The notes below the pieces were generated by a model. It saw only the letters and a program-made list of their open reading frames with translations. It had not been told where the DNA came from and searched no databases. A DNA stretch of 64,000 nucleotides, taken from Paramoeba atlantica. Lineage: Eukaryota > Protista > Discosea. The position numbers and the translations under genes are program-made. This document shows positions 4,513 through 58,599 of this stretch, in pieces. Numbering within the stretch: the first letter of the stretch is position 1; every line of letters begins with the position of its first letter. The stretch covers positions 1-64,000 of the forward strand of contig CDRNVI010000139.1 in NCBI GenBank assembly GCA_977017575.1, in the 5' to 3' direction.

Positions 4513-8455
<3,943 letters not shown>

Positions 8456-8823: not shown

Positions 8824-8896
8824 AGGCTCCAATGGGAATCGAACCCATGACCTCCACCTTACTAGGGTGGCGCTCTGCCAGCTAAGCTATGGAGCC
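8824..8896 (-). tRNA. trnT: tRNA-Thr(AGT), copy 1
   Basis: GGCTCCA...TGGAGCC acceptor stem, CCACC-CTAGTAA-GGTGG anticodon arm, GTTCGATTC T-loop, oligo-T directly downstream. Confidence 0.95.
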
Positions 8897-9378: not shown

Positions 9379-9451
9379 AGGCTCCAATGGGAATCGAACC
9401 CATGACCTCCACCTTACTAGGGTGGCGCTCTGCCAGCTAAGCTATGGAGCC
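9379..9451 (-). tRNA. trnT: tRNA-Thr(AGT), copy 2 (identical)
   Basis: Identical to copy 1; T-run terminator about 10 nt downstream. Confidence 0.95.
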
Positions 9452-10824: not shown

Positions 10825-12866
10825 ATGAGTGGAGAAAAGAGAAAGAGAGATGTGGAAAGGGGTGAGATTGAGGAAAAAAGAGAAACAAAAAGAGGAAAAA
10901 TTGATGATAAAGACGAAAATCACGAAAGAAAAGACAGAAAGAGAGAAGAGGAAAGAGAAGAAGTTGAAGAAAGTGGAAGAAGAGAAAAAGAGAAGAAAAG
11001 GTTTGAATGTGGAATATGTTTGGAATTGATGTGTTGGGAAAAAGAACCACGGCTGTTCCCTTGTTGTGGGAGTTCGTTTTGTTCGTCCTGTCTCAACAAA
11101 CTCTTTCTGCTTCCAACGACCCCATCTCCTTCCTCTTCTTCCTCAACTTCTCCAACAAAGAAAGGAGTGAGATGTCCTGTTTGTGGAAAAGAAAACGAAT
11201 TTGAATCAGTTGAGTCACTTGAGATGAATTATTTGATTCCTGAAACGATTGATGTTCTTCTTTCTTCAAATCTTTTGTATTCTTTCTCGAGTAACTCAGG
11301 TTCTTTTGTTTTCTTTTCTCTCTCTCCCTCTCTCTTGTTCCTTTTCTTTTTCCCTTTCTTTTTCCCCTTTTCTTTTTCCCATTCTAATTTCAAAACATTC
11401 TCACAGAAGGAGACGAAGCGAAATGTGAGAATTTCGAAACTTGTGGAGAACGAACACAAATGTTCTGTCCTATTTGCAAGATGTTCATTTGCGACACTTG
11501 TGAGCCGTCTCACATTTCATCTATTTTCTCTCGAAATCATAAACGTGAACAACGCAACAGTTGGAGTGATGGTGGTGAGGGTGGAAGGTTGGGATTGGAG
11601 AATGTGAAAAAGAAGAAAGAATGTTTCAAACATCCCTCTGAATTTATCAGTGGTTATTGTTTTGGATGTTCTGTTCTTGTTTGTAATCTTTGTGGTCATG
11701 ATACTCAGAAAGTGATGTCGATTGAAGAGAGTGCTGTAAAGAAAAGAGAGGAAGTTGTTAAGATTGGGATTGGGTTAGATAATAGATCGAAAGTTATTGA
11801 AGATCGAAGGAAGAGAGTTGAAGAAGAAATTAAAGAGTTGGAAGAAAAATTAGAAAAGAAGAGAGCTGAAAAGAAAGAAATTGTATTAGAGGAAGAAGAT
11901 TTGAGAATAAGACAAGATTCTATTGTTCGATTGTCCAACACACTTTCAGACATTTCTCTTTTTGATGATCAACTTTTTTCGACTCTTCTTCAAACTGCCA
12001 AGGAGATTGTTTCAGAAGTTGGACTCTTGTTGCCACCAAAATCGATTTGCTCTGATGGAGTCCATTTTGTTTCGAAATTTCGTTTTGAGAAAGGTGTTTG
12101 GGGTCTGAGTGTGAACGGCGATGGGAACATTTTTGTCAGCCAAGATAATGGTGGGGGAGTAATCGTGGTTGACAAAGAAGGAAAGACTATTGAGCCTCTT
12201 CAAACAACACTCACTTCTCTGAAGTTAGAACCTATTGATGTTGCAATTGGATTGAATGATCAAATTATTGTTCTTCATTGGGCTCAATGTGAATATCGAG
12301 TCGTAATATTGAGCAAAGAAGGAGAATTGATCAAATCTATTGGATCGAATGGTTCTCAAGATGGTCAATTTTTTGGACCGTATGGCGTTGAGGTGGATGA
12401 AAAAGGTCGGATTATTGTTGCTGACACCTTCAATCACCGAATTCAAGTGTTTAATAATGACGGGTCGTTTCTTCGTTCTTTTGGCTCAAAAGGTTCTTCT
12501 GAAGGTCAATTTGACCAGCCTTATAGTGTTGCAGTTGATAGAGATGGAAATGTTGTTGTTTGTGATTGGGGAAATCATCGGATTCAGGTGCTTGATATTG
12601 AAGGAAATTTTATTCGAAGCTTTGGAATACATGGTTCAGAAGATGGTCAATTAAATTGTCCAAGAAGTGTTGGTGTAGATGGGAAAGGTCGAATTGTTGT
12701 TCTTGAAGAAGGAAATGGGAGAGTGAGTGTGTTTGAGAAAGATGGAACGTTTCTTTTTTCGTTTGGGAAAGATTACATGGAGAAACCTTGGGGAATTGCT
12801 GTTGATTCGTTCGGCTCAATTTTTGTTTCAGATTATGATCAGAAGTCAGTTCAATTGTGGGAGTAA
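10825..12866 (+). CDS. RING - B-box - B-box - coiled coil - NHL repeat protein (TRIM-NHL-like E3 ligase); one intron 11300-11406
   Basis: CGIC...PCCGSSFCSSC...CPVC (RING), FCPICKMFICDTCEPSH and CFKH...YCFGCSVLVCNLCGH (B-boxes), E/K-rich coil, repeated F..P.GVAVD..G.IIV.D..NHRIQVF (NHL). Confidence 0.9.
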
Positions 12867-26000: not shown

Positions 26001-29000
26001 AGAAAGAGAGAAGAAAGAGGAAGAGAGAGAGAGAAGAAAGAAAAGAAAGAGAGAAGAGAGAGAGAGGGAGGAAGAGAAAGAAAAGAGAGAGAAAGAGAAA
26101 GAGAAGAAAGAGAGAAGAGAGAAAGAAAGAAAAAAAAAACCTGATTTCTAAGTTTGCTAAGAAGAAGAGCATGTTGATCGGCAGCATCTTGATATTGTCC
26201 TTTCTTTCTTGAAATTCTCTCTTCAAATTGTTCTTTTATCTTGATTTTTTTTTTGTTGCAAAAGAGAAATTTTAAAATGAATTTTTAGTAATAAAAAAAA
26301 GGAGAATTTTTATTTATTTATTTATTTATTAATTTATTTATTATTATTTCTTGTTAATTTTGATTCTTTTCTTTTTTTTGGAGAAGGGATTTAAAAATAA
26401 TAAAAAAAAAACCTGTTCTTTTTGAATTTCCAAACCAGAAGAAGCAGCCTCATACGCTCTTTTTAACTCCCCAATCTATTTTTTTGTATTTTCAATTTTC
26501 TCTTTCTTCTTTCTTCTTTCTTCTTCTTTCTCTTCTTTCTTCTTCTTTCTCTTCTCTCCCTTTTCTCAGTTCTCTTAATCTCTCAGTCTCTCTCTTTCTA
26601 TTGAGCCTCTCTCTTCTCTCCCTCTCTCTTTCTCTTCTCTTTCTCCTCTCTTTCTCCTCTCTTCTCTTTCTCTCTTCTCTTTCTCTCTTCTTCTTCTTTC
26701 TCAACCTGGAGTTCAAGATCAGAACATTTTCTTCGATGGGAAGCAGCAGCAGCCGCCGTCTCCTCCACTTTGACTTTTATTTTGAAAATGAAAATTAGAA
26801 TTTTATTATTCTTATTTTTATTTTATTTGATGAGAGAAAGAGAGAAAGAGAAGAAAAGAGAAAGAAAGAGAGAAAGAAAGAAAGAGAGAAAGAGAGAAAA
26901 AGAGAAAGAAAAGAGAGAGAAAGAAAGAAAAAAAAGACTTACTCCTCGCAGTTGGACCATTGGCAGAAACAAAACGATCTTGAAGAATATCAATTTCAGT
27001 TTGTTTGGCAAGAAGATTGTCTTGTAAATCTAATATCACTTTTTCTGCGATTCCCATTTCGTTTAATTGTTCTTGGCATCTGTTGGTTTGTTGAGAGAGA
27101 GAAGAGATAAGAGAGAGAGAGAGGAAGGAGTAAGAGAAAAGAGGGAGGAAGGAGAGAAAAGAATTTTTTTAAAAAAAATTCAGAGAAAAGAGAGAGAGAG
27201 AGAGAGAAGAAAGAGAAAAAAGAAAAAAGAACTTTTTTCGTTGAAGAGTTAATTCTTTCATTTGTTGGTTCAAAGCAGGTCTTTCTTCTTCAGCAATGGC
27301 CACCGCTTCTGCCACCTATTCACACAAAATAAAAATTAATTCTTTTTTTTGTTTGTTTTAATTTTTTTAAATTAATTAATAAAAAAAAATTAAAAGATTT
27401 TTGAGAAGAAAGGATAGAGGAAAGAAAAAGAAAAGAAAAGAAAAAGAAAAAGAAAAAAGAAAAAGAAAAAAGAAGAACCTTGGCCGCTTTTTCAGATAAA
27501 ATTTGATAATTTTGTTTAATATCATTCAATGGCCCTGAAACATCTTCTTGTCCATCTCTTTCTTGTCTTATTTTATCTCTGTTTTTAAAAATGATGAGAA
27601 AGAGAGAGAGTGAGAGAGGAAAAGGAAAGAGAGTGAGTGAGAGAGAGGAAAAGAGAGAAGGAAAAAGAGAGAGTGAGGGGAGAGAGAGAGAGAAAGAGAT
27701 AAGAAAAGAGAAACCTCTTTTCTTGAGCAAGAAGAAGTTCTTCTTTCTTTCTTTTGAGGCCCTCTTCTCTCTCACGTACTCTCTCTTTCTTTTCTCTCAT
27801 TTCTTTCTTTCTCTTTTCACAATTTTCTTTTAGTTCATCCAAGTTTTCCTGATAATTGAAAAAGAGTCAAAGAAAAGAAAAAGAAAGAAAGATTGAAAAA
27901 AGAAGATGATAAAAGAAAGAGAGAAAGAAAAATACTTTAAGTTTGTCTCGATCAGAAAAGAGAGAAGAAGTTTCTTTCTCTGTTGTGATCAGTGCCTCTC
28001 CATGTTCAACAATCTGTTTTATTATAAATTCATAAATTATCTTTAAAAAAGAAAGAAAAAAATATTTTTAAAAGAATAATAAAACATTAAATTAATGAAT
28101 CAATTAATTTTTTAAAAAAAAAGACTCAAAAATCAAATTTTGAAAGAAAAAAAAACATTTTTTTCCATTGCAACCAAAAGAGCTTCCTCCTCTCCCAAAT
28201 CACGAAAAAGAGCTTCTCTCTCTTCTTGAACAATCTCCATCTCTTTTACCAAACTCTCCAAAGCAACTTCCGCCTCAACAGAAATTTCTTCTTCTTCTTC
28301 TTCAGAAAGAGAGAGAGAAGGAGAAGAAGAGGAAGAGGAAGAGGAAGAAGAAGAGGAGGAGGAAGGAGAGGGAGAAGAAAGAGGAGAAGAATCAAGGAGA
28401 AGAGAATCTTGTCCAGTGACTGATCTTTTCCATTCTGAGAGATTAAAGTCTTTTCCTTTCATTTTTAAGAGAAGTTGCTCTCTTTCTTTGATTTGCCCCT
28501 TGTTTCAAGAAAGAAAAAAGTTAATATTCAAACAAACAATCAAGAAAAGAAGAAATTAAGAAAAGGAATAATAAATTTAAGAAATAATAAAGAAAGAAAG
28601 AAACCTCAAGAATACGAATTCGTTCAGTCATTTTGGTAACCATTGCTTCCAATTGTTCCAACGATTTCTGTGAATTAACTTTTGCTGAATTTTTCACTTG
28701 TTTTGCTCTTTGTGCAAATCTAAGAATTTGATTAATTAGAATAGAAAATCATTAAATTCTCAGAATATAAGATTAGAGTCAAAAGAAAAAAATCCAAGAA
28801 GAAAGTTTCTTCTCCTTGAATCAAAAAAAGAAATCCCTCTCGGGATTTTCCTTTTCAAAAAAGAGAAATCATTCACAAAAGGCGCTGTGGCGGAGTGGTC
28901 TAACGCGGCAGACTGCTAATCTGTTTCCCTCCGGGGAGCGTGAGTTCGAATCTCACCGGCGTCGTTTATTTTTTTGGGTTTTTTTTTGCTGTCTGTTGCG

Positions 29001-31979
29001 TTAGACCACTCCGACACAACCCCTTTTGAGAAAGAATTCCATTTTCCAAAAATGAAAACTCGCCAGTGCTCGTCGGTTTCATGCTGGTGAACATGCTGGT
29101 GGAACACACTGCTTTTGTTATGAAACAAAATCCAGAGACTCTGCCTCCCCGTTGTAAAGGAAGTCAGCTCTCCTCCTGTGGCCATAAATGCACTCAAGAC
29201 TGCACCCAAAAGTGGATCATGTTCTTTCTTTCACTTCCTGTTGGACTTTGTCCTTGGACTTCCACTTGGACTTTCCACTTCTGGAGCACTGAATTGAAGA
29301 GCAACATGACAGTATTTCTTGAATCAAAAAATGGACCCTCCCAGATTTTCCTTTTCAAAAAGAGAAATCATTCACAAAAGGCGCTGTGGCGGAGTGGTCT
29401 AACGCGGCAGACTGCTAATCTGTTTCCCTCCGGGGAGCGTGAGTTCGAATCTCACCGGCGTCGTTTATTTTTTTGACTTTCTTTTTTGTTTCTGACATTT
29501 TCTTTGTCAAGACAAAAAAAAATTGGTGCCGGTGAGATTCGAACTCACGCTCCCATAGGGAAATATAGTTAAAGTACATCGCGTTAGACCACTCCGCCAC
29601 AGCCCCTTTTGAGAAAGATTTCCATTTTCCAAAAGTGAAAACTCGAGGAGGAACCAAAAGAAAACTCCAAGCGTCTCAGAAAGAAAAAATGAAAGAGAAA
29701 GTTGACCTTAAAGTTGACAGAGTCTCTGTAATATTAAAAACATGTTGAGAACAACACACAATCAGGGTGGTTTTTGAATTACCACCCAAACTCTCGCTCA
29801 AAATAAAAGTCAATTTTGAATCTCGGTAAGGAACATGCCCCTAAAAATAAATAAAAATCAAAAAAAACTTCTCCCATCTCCTTTTGTCTTTTCCTGCTCT
29901 TCTCTCTGAGTCTATTTGCCCAAAAACTGCAAAAAAAAAACCTTTTTAGCAGAAGAAAGAGAATTAATACAATTTCCAAGAGCGGACAAAGATTGATTAA
30001 TCTTTTTGGCTTCCTCAAGTGTGTTTCCTGTTGCTCCAGTTTTTCCAACACTCTCACTTCCTGTATTCCAGGAAAGTGTTATAATGAATAATTCATTTAA
30101 TAAAGAACAAGGGGGAAAAGAAACAAAACAGAACCTGCAAGATCTGCAAGATTCAGACGTCCAGTTTTTGTACCTCCATCAGGAGACTATCCACAAAAAA
30201 GAAATTAAAAACAACTCAACACAAACAATATTTTAAAAAAAACGAATCTCGCGTTCCCAAATCAATAAAAAAAAAAAACCAAAAACAAGACAAAAAAGAA
30301 AAAAAGAAAAAACAACAAAAAACCCAACGAAGAAATAAAAGAGAAAAAACCTTTTGAGTGACACTGATCATAAATAAAGAATGAGATCTCGATGATGACT
30401 CATTCATTCCAGTGGCTGTCACACTCCTATTCTTTTCACCTCTTAAGAGCAGTTGAAAGACTTCTTCCTGTTACAAAGTCAGCTAAAATTTATTTTCATT
30501 CTTTCAAATTAAATAAATAAATTAAATCAATAAAAACCTGAGAAGAAACGTAATGTTCAGAAAGGCCTTCAATCCATGCTCCACGATTGGGAGTTTGTCG
30601 AACTTTTAAAGCATCACCAATTTCCAACAAATCTTTGACCACTTCTTTATATATCTCCAAAAATGAACTGTTTATAATTGTTTAAATTGATTGAATGGAA
30701 CAAAGAGAAGAAAAGAGAATCGAGAAAAAAGAAAAGAGAAATATGAACCATTTAACTTCCCATTCTGCTCCAGTATTATCTTTGATGATATGTTCGAATA
30801 TGTGTTCACATGCTCTTGGAATTACTCCTCTGCTTTTCAGATAAGAAAAAAAAGAAAAGACCATACAAGAAATTGACTGAAACAAATAAAAGAAGGGAAA
30901 GAAAGAAAGTAAAGAAACAAAGAATAAAAACAAAAGAGCAAAATTCAATAAATAAAGAAATAAAGAAAGAACTTGTCTCGATCTTCCAAAATGCTGGGTC
31001 CGAACATAGTATGAGTCTTTCCCGCTCCAGTTTGTCCATAAGCGAAGATTGTCCCATTGTATCCTCTTTTAAGAAGAAAACAAGAAAAAAGGGGAAAGGA
31101 GGAAAGAGATATTGGGTTAAATATCAAAGAGAAAGAAAGAAAGAAAGAAAAGAAAAAAAAAAAGAAAAAAAAGAAAAAAAAAGAAAAAGAAAATAGAAAA
31201 AGAAAAGAGTGAAAAAAGAAAGCAAACTTCAAGACATCTTCAATGGTATCACGAGCGAGATAATTGTAAACATCTTGTTGGGATACACCTTGCACTGCAT
31301 CGAAGATTCGATCGAAAGCAAATTTCTATTTTTTATTTTTCAAAATGAATCAGAATTTTTGTTGACCTTTTTTTATTTATTTTGGGAAGAAGAGATAGAT
31401 ATAAAGATAGAGAGGAAGAGAGAAGCCAAAAAAATAAAATAAAAAATGAATAGAAGAAAAGGAAGGAAGAAAGGAAGAAAGAGAGAAAGATAAAAACAGA
31501 AAAGAAAAAAGATAGAAAAGAAAGAAAAAAGAAAAGAAAAGAAAAGAAAAGAAAAGAAAAGAAAAGAAAAAAGAAAGAAAAAAACCTCATTGCGATTTCC
31601 CTTTTCAACATTAGCAACTTCAACACAAGAACCATCCCCAAAAAACTTGAACAATTCTTCTTTGCTCTTTTTTCTTAATTCTTTGCTTTTTCCTTCCTGT
31701 TTTTCAATTTAAATTGTTTTTTTTTTTGAATTTGATTTTTTTGATTTTCTTGTCTTGTCTTGTTTTCGAGTTATTATCTTTCTTTTTCTTTTCTTCTCTT
31801 TTCTTCATTTTTCATGAATTTAATTTCTTCTCCTTCAAAAAATGAGCCATCATCCCCTTCCTCCCCAACACTCCCATCTGCCTCCCAATGATCCAAACCT
31901 CTTCTTTTTCGCGCTTATTAACAGGACGAAATCGACAACAGACCCGGATATTATTCCCAGATCCCTCGTCTTGGACCAT
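23080..31979 (-). CDS. Kinesin motor protein (kinesin-1-like head), long coiled-coil stalk, C-terminal PH domain; many introns
   Basis: [81 protein letters not shown] and [11 protein letters not shown]. Tail has [16 protein letters not shown]|YFVL...[15 protein letters not shown]; TAG at 23080. Confidence 0.9.
28881..28964 (+). tRNA. trnS: tRNA-Ser(GCT), copy 1, inside kinesin intron 28720-29706
   Basis: GGCGCTG/CGGCGTC acceptor stem with G73, GCAGA-CTGCTAA-TCTGT anticodon arm, long variable arm, GTTCGAATC, T-run terminator. Confidence 0.95.
28988..29023 (-). pseudogene. Truncated tRNA 5' half (GGGGTTGTGTCGGAGTGGTCTAACGCAACAGACAGC)
   Basis: Positional counterpart of the 29524-29606 tRNA in the first repeat unit, with the same upstream flank; broken off within a Ser(GCT)-like anticodon arm. 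Confidence 0.75.
29380..29463 (+). tRNA. trnS: tRNA-Ser(GCT), copy 2 (identical)
   Basis: Identical to copy 1, including about 35 bp of 5' flank. Confidence 0.95.
29524..29606 (-). tRNA. tRNA-Ser-derived tRNA gene with anticodon TTA (reads UAA; suppressor-like), discriminator A
   Basis: Reverse complement is GGGGCTG TG GCGGAGTGGTCTAACGC G ATGTA CTTTAAC TATAT TTCCCTATGGGAG C GTGAG TTCGAAT CTCAC CGGCACC A, followed by A and T9. A and B boxes are intact; there is one acceptor-stem mismatch (G3:A70). Confidence 0.75.
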
Positions 31980-48915: not shown

Positions 48916-50703
48916 CTATCCCTTCTCTTCTCCCGCCAAATAGTGGTACACGATATCAAAGCCTTCCTTGTAAACTCCATAACCAAAACCTTCTTTCAAG
49001 TATTGGAATTCAGCATAAGAAGGACCATCACATCCTAAGGAACCCTCAAATGCAGCAAGTTGCTCGTTTCCGGCCTTGACAATCTGACAGAGCTTAACGA
49101 CGGTATCGGTAGAAGGATTGGGACACATTAACCCAAGTCGAACAAAACCTTCAGAAGAAGTGATCACTGAGAGGCAAAGACCCACAGGTTTCCATTCACG
49201 GATAATTCCGTGAGGACCTTCCGGGATAGCTGGGAAACCAAACATTTTGTAAGCATCTTCAGCAGCATTAAATTGAGTATCAAAACTATCTCCTGGAAGC
49301 TTTACTCGAATCTCAGTCTGTCTTGGGGGAGCGGCTCCCATGTCACGACCAACACTGAAACACTTTTCAATATGATGTTTCTCAGACCACTCGAGCACTT
49401 TTTTTGAGGGTTCACCAGGATCAGCAGACTCAATCGCCATCTTCATTAAAATTTCGACAGGGAAATACCATCCACCATCCATTCCACCTTTGGCAGACAT
49501 ATCAATCCAAGATCCAATCTTGATGGGGTTAATAAGAGCACCAACATCGTTCAATCGATCAATTTCGCTTTCAGGAGCACCCACATTCCAGAAAAAATCA
49601 ACCATTTTTTGAATGAAAATATTTTGAGGACCAGCTATAGAGAAAAAAAGAGATTAAAAAAAATAAAAATAAACATGAAACGTGCCTTTTAGTGCGTTGT
49701 GTTGTGTGTTGTGTTTGTTGGGTGGGGTTGGTTGTCGAAAAAAAATAATAAAACTCAAAAAACCTGTTCGCCAAGTCAATTTCTCCATGCTCGCAGAAGT
49801 TGAAACGTGGAACTCAATAGCTCCTCCAGATTGAATCTCCTCACCAACCGGAACACTTTCCGACCAAATTTGCCAGAATTCCAAAACTTTGCTCTCTTCA
49901 TCTTGAAGGAAAGGAATTGTCCCTTTCGCGAGAGAAATTTGGACTCTTGGGGAAACACCTGAACTTGGGGACTTAGCTGTCGAAGTTGGTGCAGAAGTCT
50001 GGGCTTGTTGCGTTGGAGCTGGGGAAGGAGTTGTTTGGACAGGAGTAGGAGCAGATGCGGATGAAGGGTCCTCAGATTTCTTTTTATCTTTAATTTTTTC
50101 ATTGATTGCCTTCACCCATTCCTTTGTGACTTGCTCTTTGTCAGAGTAGATAACGAACGTTCGTTTTGCTGTTGAGACTGAAAAATAAAATTTCCCTTTC
50201 TCGGCCTATGGGAAAGAAGGGGGATGAGTGAGTGAGTGTGTCCCGCACATCATAAAAATTAAAGAGATGGGAAGCAACAAACAACAAAAAAGAACCTTAT
50301 TCTTTCCAAGATCTTCTCTACATTCTGAGTCGAGTTCCAAAGGAATTGAACCAGTCAAGTCTGTGTCCTGAAAAAGAAATCGCCATTTCAGTTGTGCGTT
50401 GCGCCACCAAAAAAACGACAAAAATGAGGGTAAAAACAGAAACAAAACGAAACCTTGGGTGTCTTGAAGTAAAATAATGTATCACCCTTCAATACAAACC
50501 AACGTTTCTTCCAAGTTTTAATCGTACCACCACATTTAGTGAGGTACCCTTCTTTGTTCCCTGACCCCAAAGATTGGACTGAAATCTGTGGTCTTTCTTT
50601 GTCAAACTTCATCGAATTTGGAATTTTATCCTTCTCTCCAAAAAGAAAAAGAAGAAATATTTGAACTTTGATGAAATTGAAAAAAGGTTTTGACCTGGCT
50701 CAT
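48916..50703 (-). CDS. PH-domain protein with a Pro/Thr/Ser linker and an uncharacterised ~300-aa C-terminal domain
   Basis: KEGYLTKCGGTIKTWKKRWFVLKGDTLFYFK (PH), then an ordered domain (GSWIDMSAKGGMDGGWYFP...). The first exon encodes MSQ only. Confidence 0.8.
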
Positions 50704-51223: not shown

Positions 51224-54200
51224 ATGGCATCTCCTTTAGGTGAGGAAAAAGCCCTCCTTCGTGCCTTCTCGGTTGATTCTTACAAAACCGTTCCAATAAC
51301 TCCTCCCATGCTCTGTGAAGAAGTTGAACGCGCGTTGCGGAAGAGGATGATCGTTGTTGGAGGTGAAGCAAAAGATTTTGAAGCTTACCGTTTATTTGCA
51401 GTTTTTCTTCCTGACAAAACTGAAGTCCTTGTCCAACCAAAGCAAGTTGTTTGGCCCCTCTTAAAAGAGAAAAATGGCAAATTTTTGTTCAAAATCCCAG
51501 AACAAGTTGTCGACACAGAAAGTTATTCTTCCCCCGCCCTCTCGCCTCCTCCTGGCCGCTCTAATCCAAAGAAGTTGTCGCGACAAAGATCAGCATCTAA
51601 AGTTCACCAAAAAAGAATCGCAGAAGCCTTTGATGATGGACTTGGAGTGTTTCGAAAAGGGGGTCACCACGGTCAGAAAGATCGCTCGATTTGGATCAAA
51701 TATAAAGATATGGTTCATCAACACACTTTTCAGCCAAATCTCTCATGGGATTCTCATCTGGAACAAATATGTGCTGGTTTTGATTTAAAAGACGAAGCTC
51801 ATCTCTACACTCTCCAAGTCAAGATGACAGGTCTCTATCTGAACAGTGTCGCTGACCTTTTTGAAAGTCCCAATGCCCCTGGGGTTCGAGGAGATGTAAG
51901 TATTATTCTGACGCAGAAACCAGAGATTGAAATTAAAAAAATTATCGAGATGACGAGCGGGTTTGCAGAGGGAGCATCAGTTCGGGACGGTTTGAAGAGG
52001 TTGTGGGGTCTTGCGATGAATGAGGCAACACAAACAATTATTTTACTCTTTTTACAATACCAAGGGTTTAATTGTTTATTGAATATTCTTCGTAAATATC
52101 AAACACATCCTTCTGACACCATCCTCCTCACCCTTAAGCTTCTGGAGATGTGTATCACAATCGGAACCAAGCCACCGCCTTCTTCTCCTTCTTCACCTTC
52201 TTCATCTTCGATTATTCCTCCAGTTAAAATCGAGGGCGACGCAATTCAGAGATTAACAAAATTGATGTTGACACCAGATAACGAAACAAGTGGGACTCTT
52301 CGAATGGAAGCTGGCAAATTAGTAATCTCTGTGATAAAAACCGATAAGTTCATGTACTCTTTCTTCTTGGATCAATTGGAACAGATTTCTATGAATGCAG
52401 AAGACAAAGCTTCTCGTCATGTGATCTTTCCTTTACTTCATTTGTTCGTTGGCTCTTTACAAGGGGGGTCAGATATTCTCCTCGAAATGCTCCTGTTGAA
52501 CTTAATTACCCTTGTCATCCAACATTCTCCGAAAGAGAAAACGGAAGAAATGCCCCCTCAGAGGTCAAAACAAGAGATCATTAAGATTTTGTTTGATAAT
52601 TTTACTTTTGGAGAGCAAATCCACACACTCGCTGTGACACCTGGACGAATCGAAGTGGAAGAAGCGCTCCTCGCATTTCAGGCCGAGTTGATTACCGCTT
52701 GGTTTTGGGAAAAAGATATTACTTTTCGTCCTGGAAATGAAGATGATGAAGCTCTTCTTATGCAACTTTGGACCCTTACATATCCTGATATTCCTTTGAA
52801 GAATCGAGTATCGAAGCAGTGGGGAAAACTTGGGTTTCAGAGGTTTATTTTTTTACTTTTCAAAATTTCTCTTTTGGTTGTGGTGTTTGTTGTTGTTATT
52901 GAAAATTTTCTTTTTTGTTTTTGATTTTACTTCTTTTTAATTGGGGATGTGTTTTTTTTTTTAAAATTTATTCTTTTTTTCTTATTCTTCAGCGATGATC
53001 CTGTTCGAGATTTTCGTGCGATGGGAATGCTTGGTTTAAAACATCTGATATTTGTTACCAAACACGATAACCGAAACTTTCGTGAGATCTGTGAGACTAT
53101 GTCAAGTCAAACAGAGAATTTTTATCCAATTGCAACCGCTGGTATGATGATCTCGCAGATGCTTTGTGCTCACATCAAAAATATTGGAATGGAAAAGTTG
53201 ATTCCTTGTCTCTTTGATGGAGTCGAACCTGTTGGTCAAATGTATTGTGTTTTGACTCGAGAACTATTTCGAATATTCAATGATCGAAACGCTGGATATA
53301 TGGACTTTTCGAACATCCAGAAGGAGTTTCAAGGTATTTTCGAAGATTCTTTGGAGCGTTGTAACACCGTCCAGCAGTTAGCAAAGCAGATTGCTGCCTA
53401 TGATGATGATAGTTATACCACGATTCGAACAACAGCAGTCTATGAATGGGGTCATGGCTCGATTAGCTCTCCGACGATGGAGCAATTAGGAACATTGATG
53501 TCTAAACCTGTATTATGTGTTGCAGCATCGAGTCATGTAATTGTCGTGACAGAAACAGATGGGGTCTGGGGATGGGGTGCGAGCTCTTGTGGCCAGTTAG
53601 GGATTGAAACAACAGAAAAGCGACTCTCTTCTCCACAATTTTTAGAGAATTTCACTTCGAAACAAATTACACGAGTTTTTGTGGGAGATGGTCGGAGTGC
53701 TGGCACGACATCAATGGGTGAACTTTGGATGTGTGGAGAACAGATCCCTGCGCAGAATGGTGACCCTTCACAATCAGTTACTCTTCGAAGAGTAAACTGC
53801 GATCCCACCGGTGATGCTGTTTCTGGTGTGACGAAAGTTTCTTTTGGTCAATTTCATGGTGCCATTCTCGTTCGATCCGAAAAGAGTGGGAAAATATATA
53901 CTTGGGGACATAATACCTACTATCAGCTTGGACATTCTGATAAAGGACGAGTTGTGGAGTGGCCAAGTGTTGTTTCAGGACTCACAAATGTAGTTAGTGT
54001 TAGTGCTGGGCGTAATTTTTGTGTTGCAGTCGGATCAGACAAAACTGTTCATGCCTGGGGACAAAATGTCCCCAACAAACAGACTGGGACTGCCATTTTG
54101 GGGACAAGCGAGAAAGAGAAAGAGTTTATCGATCGTCCAAAGCGGGTGGGAGGGTTTAAAGCTTTCTTTCATGCACTTGCTGACGTCAGTTGTGGTGCAA

Positions 54201-57330: not shown

Positions 57331-58599
57331 ATGAATAGGCTTTACTTTACCTTTGTGTGTTTCTCCGTCTTCGTGAGCCTCGCTCTTGCTCGTTGCCCTA
57401 ACCAATGCAGTGGACATGGAGTTTGTGATAGTGCGTCGTTCCGATGTGCCTGTGATTCGTATTATCAAGGAAGGGATTGTGGAGTCTACAATCGCTCGTT
57501 GACCAACGGCACTTCTGCTTCCGCCATTGTGGGCACTTCTCAATGGATGTTCTTTTCCATTAACGGGACAACTAGCAATAATACGTTCGTCTGGTCGTTA
57601 AATCAAACGAAGGAAGGGGATTGTGATCTCTATGTTCAACGAAATGAGTTTCCAACTCGATTTTCCTACATTGAACGCGACATTTCCACCAAGAACGAGT
57701 CAAAGATCGAATTGTACAACCAAACAGCTGGGGTTTACTACGCTGGAGTCTACGGTTTCCAAAAGTGCAATTTCACTATTGTCGCGATGAATTCAACATC
57801 GAATGTCTCATCAAATGTGACGATGGAACCAACCAACAATACTCAATCCTCAAATTGTAGTTTCCATGGTGAATTTGTCAACACCACATGTAATTGTAGT
57901 GCCGGTTTTAATGGTACCCAATGTGAGGAATATATGCCTGCTCTTCCCTTGAACACAACCATGTCCGGGTATGTCGGTGAAAATTTCTGGAATTACTATC
58001 ACGTGGATACTCGTGGTTTTAAAAGCTTGAATGTGTCTCTGAATCAGACCGGGAACAGTAGCTCCTCTGGAGATTGCGACCTCTATGTCAGCCATGGACA
58101 AAAGCCCTCATTGTTTCAATATCAGTTCTCGAACGTGAGCATGGACCAACGTCTTGATTTGATTATCCCCGAAACTAACAATCAAACTTGGTACATCGGA
58201 GTCTATGGTTGGTCTAATTGCAGTTACACATTGAATGTCTCTGTGCCGCGCCATGAGAAGGTTCTTCCCACAAACCTCACATCCGGACAACCCCTTGCCC
58301 TCAATGTCTCTCGAAATGAATGGCAAAACTTTTCCATCGATGTCGAACACTTAAAAGCTCTCTCTCTGACCTTGAAAGAGTCCGCCACTGTTGGTGCTGT
58401 GAGTGTCTTTGTTAAATTTGGTGAACTCCCTACATTGCAGAGTCATGATTATTCCAATCAATTGACAAGCAGTGGTCATCAAATCAGAGTCCTTGATCGT
58501 GAGGGATACACTGGCACTGTTTATGTTGGCGTCCTTGGTTCTCCTTCGATTCCATTCTTTTCTTCGGTTGACTATAAACTTCGAGTTTCTGTGAAATAA
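57331..58599 (+). CDS. Secreted EGF-like / PPC (pre-peptidase C-terminal) domain glycoprotein, intronless as read
   Basis: Signal peptide MNRLYFTFVCFSVFVSLALA, CPNQCSGHGVC...CACDSYYQGRDC and CSFHGEF...CNCSAGFNGTQC (EGF), GDCDLYV x2 (PPC-like), many N-x-S/T sites. Confidence 0.8.
   Translation: MNRLYFTFVCFSVFVSLALARCPNQCSGHGVCDSASFRCACDSYYQGRDCGVYNRSLTNGTSASAIVGTSQWMFFSINGTTSNNTFVWSLNQTKEGDCDLYVQRNEFPTRFSYIERDISTKNESKIELYNQTAGVYYAGVYGFQKCNFTIVAMNSTSNVSSNVTMEPTNNTQSSNCSFHGEFVNTTCNCSAGFNGTQCEEYMPALPLNTTMSGYVGENFWNYYHVDTRGFKSLNVSLNQTGNSSSSGDCDLYVSHGQKPSLFQYQFSNVSMDQRLDLIIPETNNQTWYIGVYGWSNCSYTLNVSVPRHEKVLPTNLTSGQPLALNVSRNEWQNFSIDVEHLKALSLTLKESATVGAVSVFVKFGELPTLQSHDYSNQLTSSGHQIRVLDREGYTGTVYVGVLGSPSIPFFSSVDYKLRVSVK

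Follow-up and report, generated by a model that had tools for sequence, protein, structure and literature searches.

A tRNA-Ser(GCT) derivative with a UAA-complementary anticodon in a kinesin intron of Paramoeba atlantica

Yeast SUQ5 (SUP16) and the suppressors of the S. pombe sup3 type are single-base laboratory mutants of transfer RNA (tRNA)-Ser of the UGA/UCA type that act as serine-inserting nonsense suppressors and, because Ser identity is independent of the anticodon, a Ser tRNA with a stop anticodon can in principle stay charged. The subject of this work is a gene of comparable make-up, here called the TTA gene, which occupies positions 29524-29606 on the minus strand of a stretch of 64,000 nucleotides (nt) from Paramoeba atlantica (Discosea; positions 1 to 64,000 of contig CDRNVI010000139.1, assembly GCA_977017575.1; hereafter the window), and which likewise carries a stop-reading anticodon on a Ser tRNA body. 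It departs from SUQ5 and sup3, which keep G73 and normal stems, in that three anticodon bases and most of the anticodon stem have changed and G73 has been lost. Another parallel is offered by the Candida tRNA-Ser(CAG), an abundantly expressed tRNA of proven function and mixed Ser/Leu identity, which keeps G73 where the TTA gene has A73. The likeness lies in a Ser-type tRNA capturing a codon of other meaning, with features of Leu identity (background in PMC5951914).

Genes for tRNA-Sup(UUA) also occur where UAA has been reassigned, the codon specifying Gln in Tetrahymena, in which the UUA anticodon reads both UAA and UAG, and Lys in Oligohymenophorea sp. PL0344, which has 12 gene copies (PMC10553269). 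These systems carry the gene in several copies and hold numerous UAA codons in frame, whereas the TTA gene is single-copy and TAA is a common stop. Entries labelled 'Sup' also stand in tRNA gene databases. In maize, which uses the standard code, tRNA-finding programs predict genes with suppressor anticodons whose function is unproven (10.1101/2023.03.20.533458). The TTA gene resembles such maize-type predictions in having an anticodon for a stop that its genome still employs, and goes beyond them in its local parent, truncated sister, rewritten yet paired anticodon arm and polymorphic intermediate. Lastly, anticodon shifts after gene duplication are well documented, and they are mostly single-base, directed to sense anticodons and syntenically conserved (Rogers and Griffiths-Jones, 2014; PMC3923123), with shifts to stop anticodons counting 14/414 among the possible single-base changes (PMC3923123). 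Like these remoulded genes (PMC3923123), the TTA gene is a duplicate with a new anticodon and additional changes in the acceptor and variable regions; in contrast to them, it has undergone a three-base shift.

The TTA gene is a real, single-copy gene of Ser(GCT) ancestry, lying in an intron of a kinesin gene and in a genomic window where TAA serves as a stop. The best explanation, held at roughly even confidence, is that it is a young remoulded paralogue of tRNA-Ser(GCT), transcribable and either weakly active or inactive. As a duplicate of the local Ser(GCT) family, it has had its anticodon arm rewritten and has lost G73 and the pair 3:70. The gene is probably still transcribed, judging from its A and B boxes, D and T arms, variable arm, CAAAAG start context and terminator of nine T, and its product would be a weakly charged or uncharged RNA of low activity, allowing at most a trace of UAA or UAG readthrough. 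It would thus be a redundant paralogue on a birth-and-death path, and no dedicated recoding tRNA. An anticodon left to drift freely would match a stop codon by chance in 3/64 of cases and, with the very many tRNA genes in the genome, the existence of one stop-anticodon gene is hence unsurprising.

Run on the window, ARAGORN reports a 'tRNA-Stop' with anticodon tta at 29524-29606 on the minus strand, and Rfam model RF00005 aligns over its full length (1-71) with 49.2 bits, compared to a gathering score of 29 and to 58.7 bits for the two neighbouring Ser(GCT) genes. The 83-nt gene has the properties of a class II tRNA according to both programs, with a 7-nt anticodon loop containing U33, the cloverleaf arms with a 7-bp acceptor stem, the conserved U8 and G18G19, and a TTCGA T-loop; its variable region is long (14 nt) and consists of a CCC/GGG stem closed by a TAT loop. 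The anticodon, 5'-TTA-3' at tRNA positions 34-36 (29570-29572, minus strand; TAA on the plus strand), is complementary to the stop codon UAA. It is borne by an anticodon arm (29563-29579, minus strand) reading ATGTA-CTTTAAC-TATAT, the stem of which pairs as A-U, U-A, G-U, U-A and A-U and contains no G-C pair. The sole non-standard pair in the RF00005 alignment is 3:70 (G-A), and the discriminator base is A73. One base beyond the 3' end of the gene (...CACC-A) stands a run of nine T resembling an RNA polymerase III (Pol III) terminator (29514-29522, minus strand). The 5' flank (29607-29646, minus strand), with CAAAAG directly before +1, matches the Ser(GCT) genes at 29/40 positions and a truncated sister copy, described below, at 37/40. 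An earlier note on this stretch of DNA, made from its letters, had proposed the type II cloverleaf with its T-run, the UUA anticodon, a variable stem that still pairs and the G3:A70 mismatch, and the program calls bear it out on all of these, coordinates included.

The sequence was verified by comparing the window between 28300 and 30300 with contigs assembled from four public sequencing runs on this organism (X1, X2, X3 and X5, the last RNA-like). X5 has no contig over the TTA gene, which for a tRNA carries no weight. Across the TTA gene, the contigs of X1 (a 1701-nt unitig with a depth of 108.8) and X2 equal the window letter for letter, and that of X3, from another sample, has one difference, 29566 T>G, which is A>C at tRNA position 40. 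No run contig has any other letter in the anticodon and, with X1 and X2 identical and X3 differing only at position 40, the TTA anticodon is therefore no sequencing error. The chance that a sequencing or assembly artefact hides a true TGA or GCT anticodon is accordingly negligible, as the same anticodon stands in assembled contigs of three runs from three samples, and the single-base error (TGA or TAA at 29570-29572) that the earlier note had named as a refuting case is removed by the same contigs, as far as assembled sequence can show it. A single unitig spans the gene in each of the three runs, and its depth in X1 (108.8) is about that of single-copy neighbours (87-118), with the pieces common to other Ser genes, which are multi-copy, reaching 213-463 in the same run; from these depths we infer a single copy.

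Position 40 (29566, minus strand) is polymorphic. It is A in the window, X1 and X2, and C in X3, where it produces a U30-C40 mismatch and coincides with the Ser(GCT) state. By parsimony, the X3 allele looks like the uncompensated intermediate and the A40 of the window like the compensating change. In the 3' flank, X3 differs from the window by two small indels, one of which cuts the T-run to eight, and the density of polymorphism in the gene (1/83) is not below that of its flanks. The runs also disagree with the window outside the gene: position 28710 is T in the window and C in all four runs, and X1 and X3 further depart from it at 29259 and 29263, so that the window comes from a slightly different isolate or contains small errors.

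The local parentage of the TTA gene can be read from the cluster in which it lies. Over the whole window ARAGORN calls five tRNA genes, two identical Thr(AGT), two identical Ser(GCT) and the tRNA-Stop(tta). The Ser(GCT) genes, called by both ARAGORN and Rfam, are on the plus strand at 28881-28964 (copy 1) and 29380-29463 (copy 2), the latter convergent with the TTA gene and separated from it by 60 nt. Two units of about 500-580 bp, arranged in tandem, make up the cluster, each with a plus-strand Ser(GCT) gene followed by a convergent minus-strand copy, which is the TTA gene in unit 2 and a remnant at 28988-29023 in unit 1 (minus strand; repeat family D3, 94%). This remnant is a pseudogene that holds only the 5' half (33 nt) of a Ser-type tRNA and then gives way to the A-run of the spacer. 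It has G3 and A27 in common with the TTA gene, still keeps the CAGA strand of the stem, and carries the extra substitutions T5, T10 and A26. Because their flanks are identical at 37/40 positions and G3 and A27 are common to both, the TTA gene and the remnant are sisters that arose when an inverted pair of older date was recently duplicated in tandem. The presence of G3 in the truncated sister implies that the 3:70 defect predates this tandem duplication, and its retention of the CAGA strand that positions 28-30 of the TTA gene changed after it. The whole cluster, the truncated copy as well as the three complete tRNA genes, is held by a 987-nt GT..AG intron of the kinesin gene (28720-29706, minus strand), identified through a spliced X5 contig that joins 28719 to 29707 and through kinesin motor motifs in the flanking open reading frames (ORFs).

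Taking the neighbouring tRNA-Ser(GCT) as the reference, the anticodon arm differs at 10/17 positions, the rest of the gene at 6/66 plus one deletion, the D and T arms at 0/34 and the 5' flank at 11/40; the difference between the arm and the rest of the gene is significant (Fisher P=3.6e-5). The arm has changed from GCAGA-CTGCTAA-TCTGT to ATGTA-CTTTAAC-TATAT, with all three anticodon bases new (GCT to TTA). A spectrum in which GC>AT changes make up 11 of the 16 substitutions, in a genome of about 36% GC, would fit drift, whereas the kept pairing and the arm-specific acceleration would not. Elsewhere in the genome there is a second, multi-copy Ser(GCT) variant (depth about 373; loose end at window position 29565 in runs X1 and X3), which has a shorter D loop (GGTTAACGC), a GTAGA/TCTAT stem, and a variable arm that is exactly that of the TTA gene (TAT loop, one G fewer). 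Since this variant has the same variable arm and T28-A42, both are family variation and not novelties of the TTA gene, and a one-base-shorter variable arm was for the same reason ruled out as the mark of a switch from Ser to Leu. Against the second variant the arm differs at 8/17 positions, no longer clearly above the flank (P=0.07). The number of stem positions changed is four to seven, depending on the family variant chosen as parent, and the double change at 30:40, which is polymorphic, is the only one specific to the TTA gene. Several earlier proposals can be judged on this basis. The derivation from a Ser(GCT) gene, the rewriting of the arm with five pairs preserved and the change from G73 to A73 are borne out against the neighbouring gene. 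The proposed match outside the arm is correct for the D and T arms and fails for a clean stretch of some 25 bp of 5' flank, which is 29/40 identical, and of the two double compensatory changes proposed, the one at 30:40 stands and the one at 28:42, found also in the second variant, is inherited.

The changes outside the anticodon bear on charging. Recognition by eukaryotic seryl-tRNA synthetase (SerRS) depends chiefly on G73 together with the long variable arm, and A73 acts against SerRS and is a determinant for Leu (PMC9976931). The TTA gene retains the Ser-type long variable arm and has A73 in place of G73, and its product should hence be a poor SerRS substrate. From the human-type Leu set (A73, C3-G70, A4-U69, G5-C68 and a large variable region) it possesses A73 and the large region, the three pairs being here G3-A70, G4-C69 and C5-G68. 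The suggestion of the earlier note that the G3:A70 mismatch might be repaired by 5' tRNA editing is purely speculative. The anticodon stem, which has no G-C pair, is predicted to be marginal, with the hairpin alone computed at +0.8 kcal/mol versus -3.4 for the parent; when the entire RNA is folded, the structure of lowest energy (-21.6 kcal/mol against -33.6 for the parent; z=+0.37) lacks the anticodon stem. The earlier note had supposed a natural readthrough or recoding tRNA, or the recruitment of an alloacceptor in progress. Taken together, A73, the broken 3:70 pair, the stem without G-C, the AT-biased change and the truncated sister argue against an efficient Ser-inserting suppressor.

A working decoder of UAA, and perhaps of UAG by U34 wobble, that carries Ser or, owing to A73, Leu and produces low-level or context-specific readthrough, is therefore considered unlikely. 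Such a decoder would stand at the 'ambiguous intermediate' stage on the way to capturing a stop codon, or be devoted to particular recoded genes or retroelements. It would account for the full cloverleaf with intact promoter boxes and terminator, for a stem that stays paired despite its many changes and has a compensating allele that is polymorphic, and for the confinement of fast change to the anticodon arm (P=3.6e-5 relative to the remainder of the gene), but A73, G3-A70 and the lack of G-C pairs in the stem predict low charging and low stability, the acceptor stem is without the human-type Leu pairs C3-G70 and A4-U69, and the gene exists in a single copy. In its most demanding form, with the TTA tRNA expressed, charged with Ser or Leu and engaged in regulated low-level reading of UAA or UAG while TAA stays a main stop, the proposal appears very unlikely.

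The use of TAA in the window also speaks against a decoder. As the earlier note had maintained, TAA still terminates genes here: it ends four ORFs, namely the probable last RIO2 ORF (8453-8455), the NHL ORF (12864-12866) and two ORFs whose ends lie at 58599 and 36544. None of the Pfam-supported coding regions of this 64-kb window showed a TAA in frame, and in it the long Pfam-supported ORFs (up to 1223 codons) are TAA-free by construction of the ORF list. Wherever pairs of long ORFs in the same frame are split by one stop, every case inspected in the window turned out to be an intron. An apparent readthrough of the ELMO domain in the ELMO/RCC1/RhoGAP gene across a stop at 52922 was thus rejected, this stop being a TGA inside a T-rich GT..AG intron (52845-52992, plus strand) of about 148 nt that keeps the frame and so makes the exons mimic one TGA-broken ORF. 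The same applies to the same-frame ORFs split by a TAA at 49656, which have an intron between them. ORF-length statistics with reduced stop sets were discarded as uninformative because they track trinucleotide frequency alone. The code in this window looks standard, with TAA a frequent terminator and, TAA being a genuine common stop, an efficient UAA suppressor would be costly.

Several observations nevertheless weigh against the view of the TTA gene as a weakly active or inactive paralogue. The loss of pairing, promoter boxes or terminator that defines a pseudogene is not seen in it: pair 3:70 alone is broken, and the gene has intact A and B boxes, an intact T9 terminator and its CAAAAG start context. 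The arm has changed more than the 5' flank (10/17 vs 11/40, P=0.007), which is unexpected under plain neutral drift. All five stem pairs have been kept despite 7 stem substitutions, with a probability of about 0.006 in simulations of uniform random substitution and of about 0.02 by a hand estimate that allows for transition bias and pair-preserving transitions. The truncated sister has other bases at positions 28-30, although the flanks of the two copies differ at 3/40 positions only (P=0.007). Furthermore, the pair 2:71 has gone from G-U to G-C, and the A40 of the window re-pairs, in the manner of a compensation, a position that is still mismatched (U30-C40) in X3. The kept pairing, the arm-specific acceleration and the compensating polymorphism hint at constraint, but they are balanced by the marginal stem, the missing Ser discriminator, the old mismatch in the acceptor stem, the AT-biased change and the dead sister.

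Pairing of this kind could also arise without selection for function if the new arm was created by a single complex mutation or a small number of them, for example by conversion of a patch from some other, unseen tRNA gene or by short template switching within the hairpin, a mechanism documented to make and maintain hairpin pairing (PMC8794818). That bases 28-30 and all anticodon bases changed in the time in which the flanks came to differ at 3/40 positions only agrees with such an event, as does the mosaic composition of the gene, with a D loop like that of the neighbouring gene and a variable arm and 28:42 pair like those of the second Ser(GCT) variant. A donor is nonetheless not apparent locally: within the 64-kb window the search for a template of the new arm returned no 17-mer at three or fewer mismatches and no exact 9-mer elsewhere. 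Moreover, the stem is no perfect copy of one strand, given its G29-U41 wobble, and the polymorphism of position 40 means that this base changed separately. An origin by complex events is rated as unlikely.

A different view of the unchanged D and T arms (0/34) is that the gene persists for a non-decoding role, either as a site bound by TFIIIC or Pol III or through a Pol III transcript in the shape of a tRNA that yields, for instance, small RNA fragments; the anticodon would be irrelevant to such a role. Both promoter boxes, A and B, would then be maintained along with the D and T arms while the decoding and charging ends change, and the intronic position in the same orientation as the kinesin host gene could be of a piece with such a role. 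The conservation of these arms may, however, equally well reflect a short time since duplication or concerted evolution in a large gene family; nothing points specifically to a non-decoding function, and two Ser(GCT) genes already provide Pol III sites in the same intron. This role is accordingly regarded as highly improbable, and the young, weakly active or inactive paralogue is retained as the best explanation.

Searches for relatives of the TTA gene gave negative results. Of two metagenome pattern scans for a TTA Ser-type tRNA, one was empty and the other returned 19 loci, almost all in dense tRNA arrays of phage or bacterial type, without a tRNA of this kind. In viral contigs, the arm gave seven chance matches, none within a tRNA. 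Protein-database searches yielded no candidates with the spurious 80-amino-acid ORF that overlaps the TTA gene, and no match with the neighbouring 598-amino-acid ORF, used to look for syntenic loci. A separate observation from the marine metagenome contigs concerns Lys-like tRNAs to which ARAGORN assigns a four-base anticodon 'ttta' in an enlarged anticodon loop (L002:291-362, L004:1316-1388 and L012:790-863); they adjoin a normal tRNA-Lys(ttt) in dense arrays of phage or bacterial type.

Other features of the locus and of the window can be described briefly. Ser(GCT) copy 2 and the TTA gene (29380-29606) are the two arms of an imperfect inverted repeat, 84 nt long and interrupted by a spacer of 60 nt, and the microRNA-like Rfam matches at 29418-29567 (MIR530, 51.8 bits; mir-3923, 51.2 bits) were dismissed as a product of this tRNA inverted repeat, their scores being far below the gathering scores. 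In the kinesin gene, the X5 contig also splices 28497 to 28604, across a 106-nt intron. The two tRNA-Thr(AGT) genes (8824-8896 and 9379-9451, minus strand) are identical and 555 bp apart, are preceded by AACAAGT and followed by T-runs, and constitute another small tandem duplication.

When a stop codon is reassigned, a suppressor tRNA presumably competes for a time with the release factor, and natural examples at that stage are scarce. If regulated low-level decoding did take place, the TTA gene would be a living 'ambiguous intermediate', its weak stem and altered acceptor end being a tuning for tolerable readthrough. If it is inactive, it belongs to ordinary tRNA birth and death, and cautions that a high-scoring 'Sup' call with a neat cloverleaf is no evidence of recoding. 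With its datable local parent, its dead sister and its within-species stem polymorphism, the TTA gene offers a handy case for distinguishing among tolerated, tuned-down and decaying suppressors.

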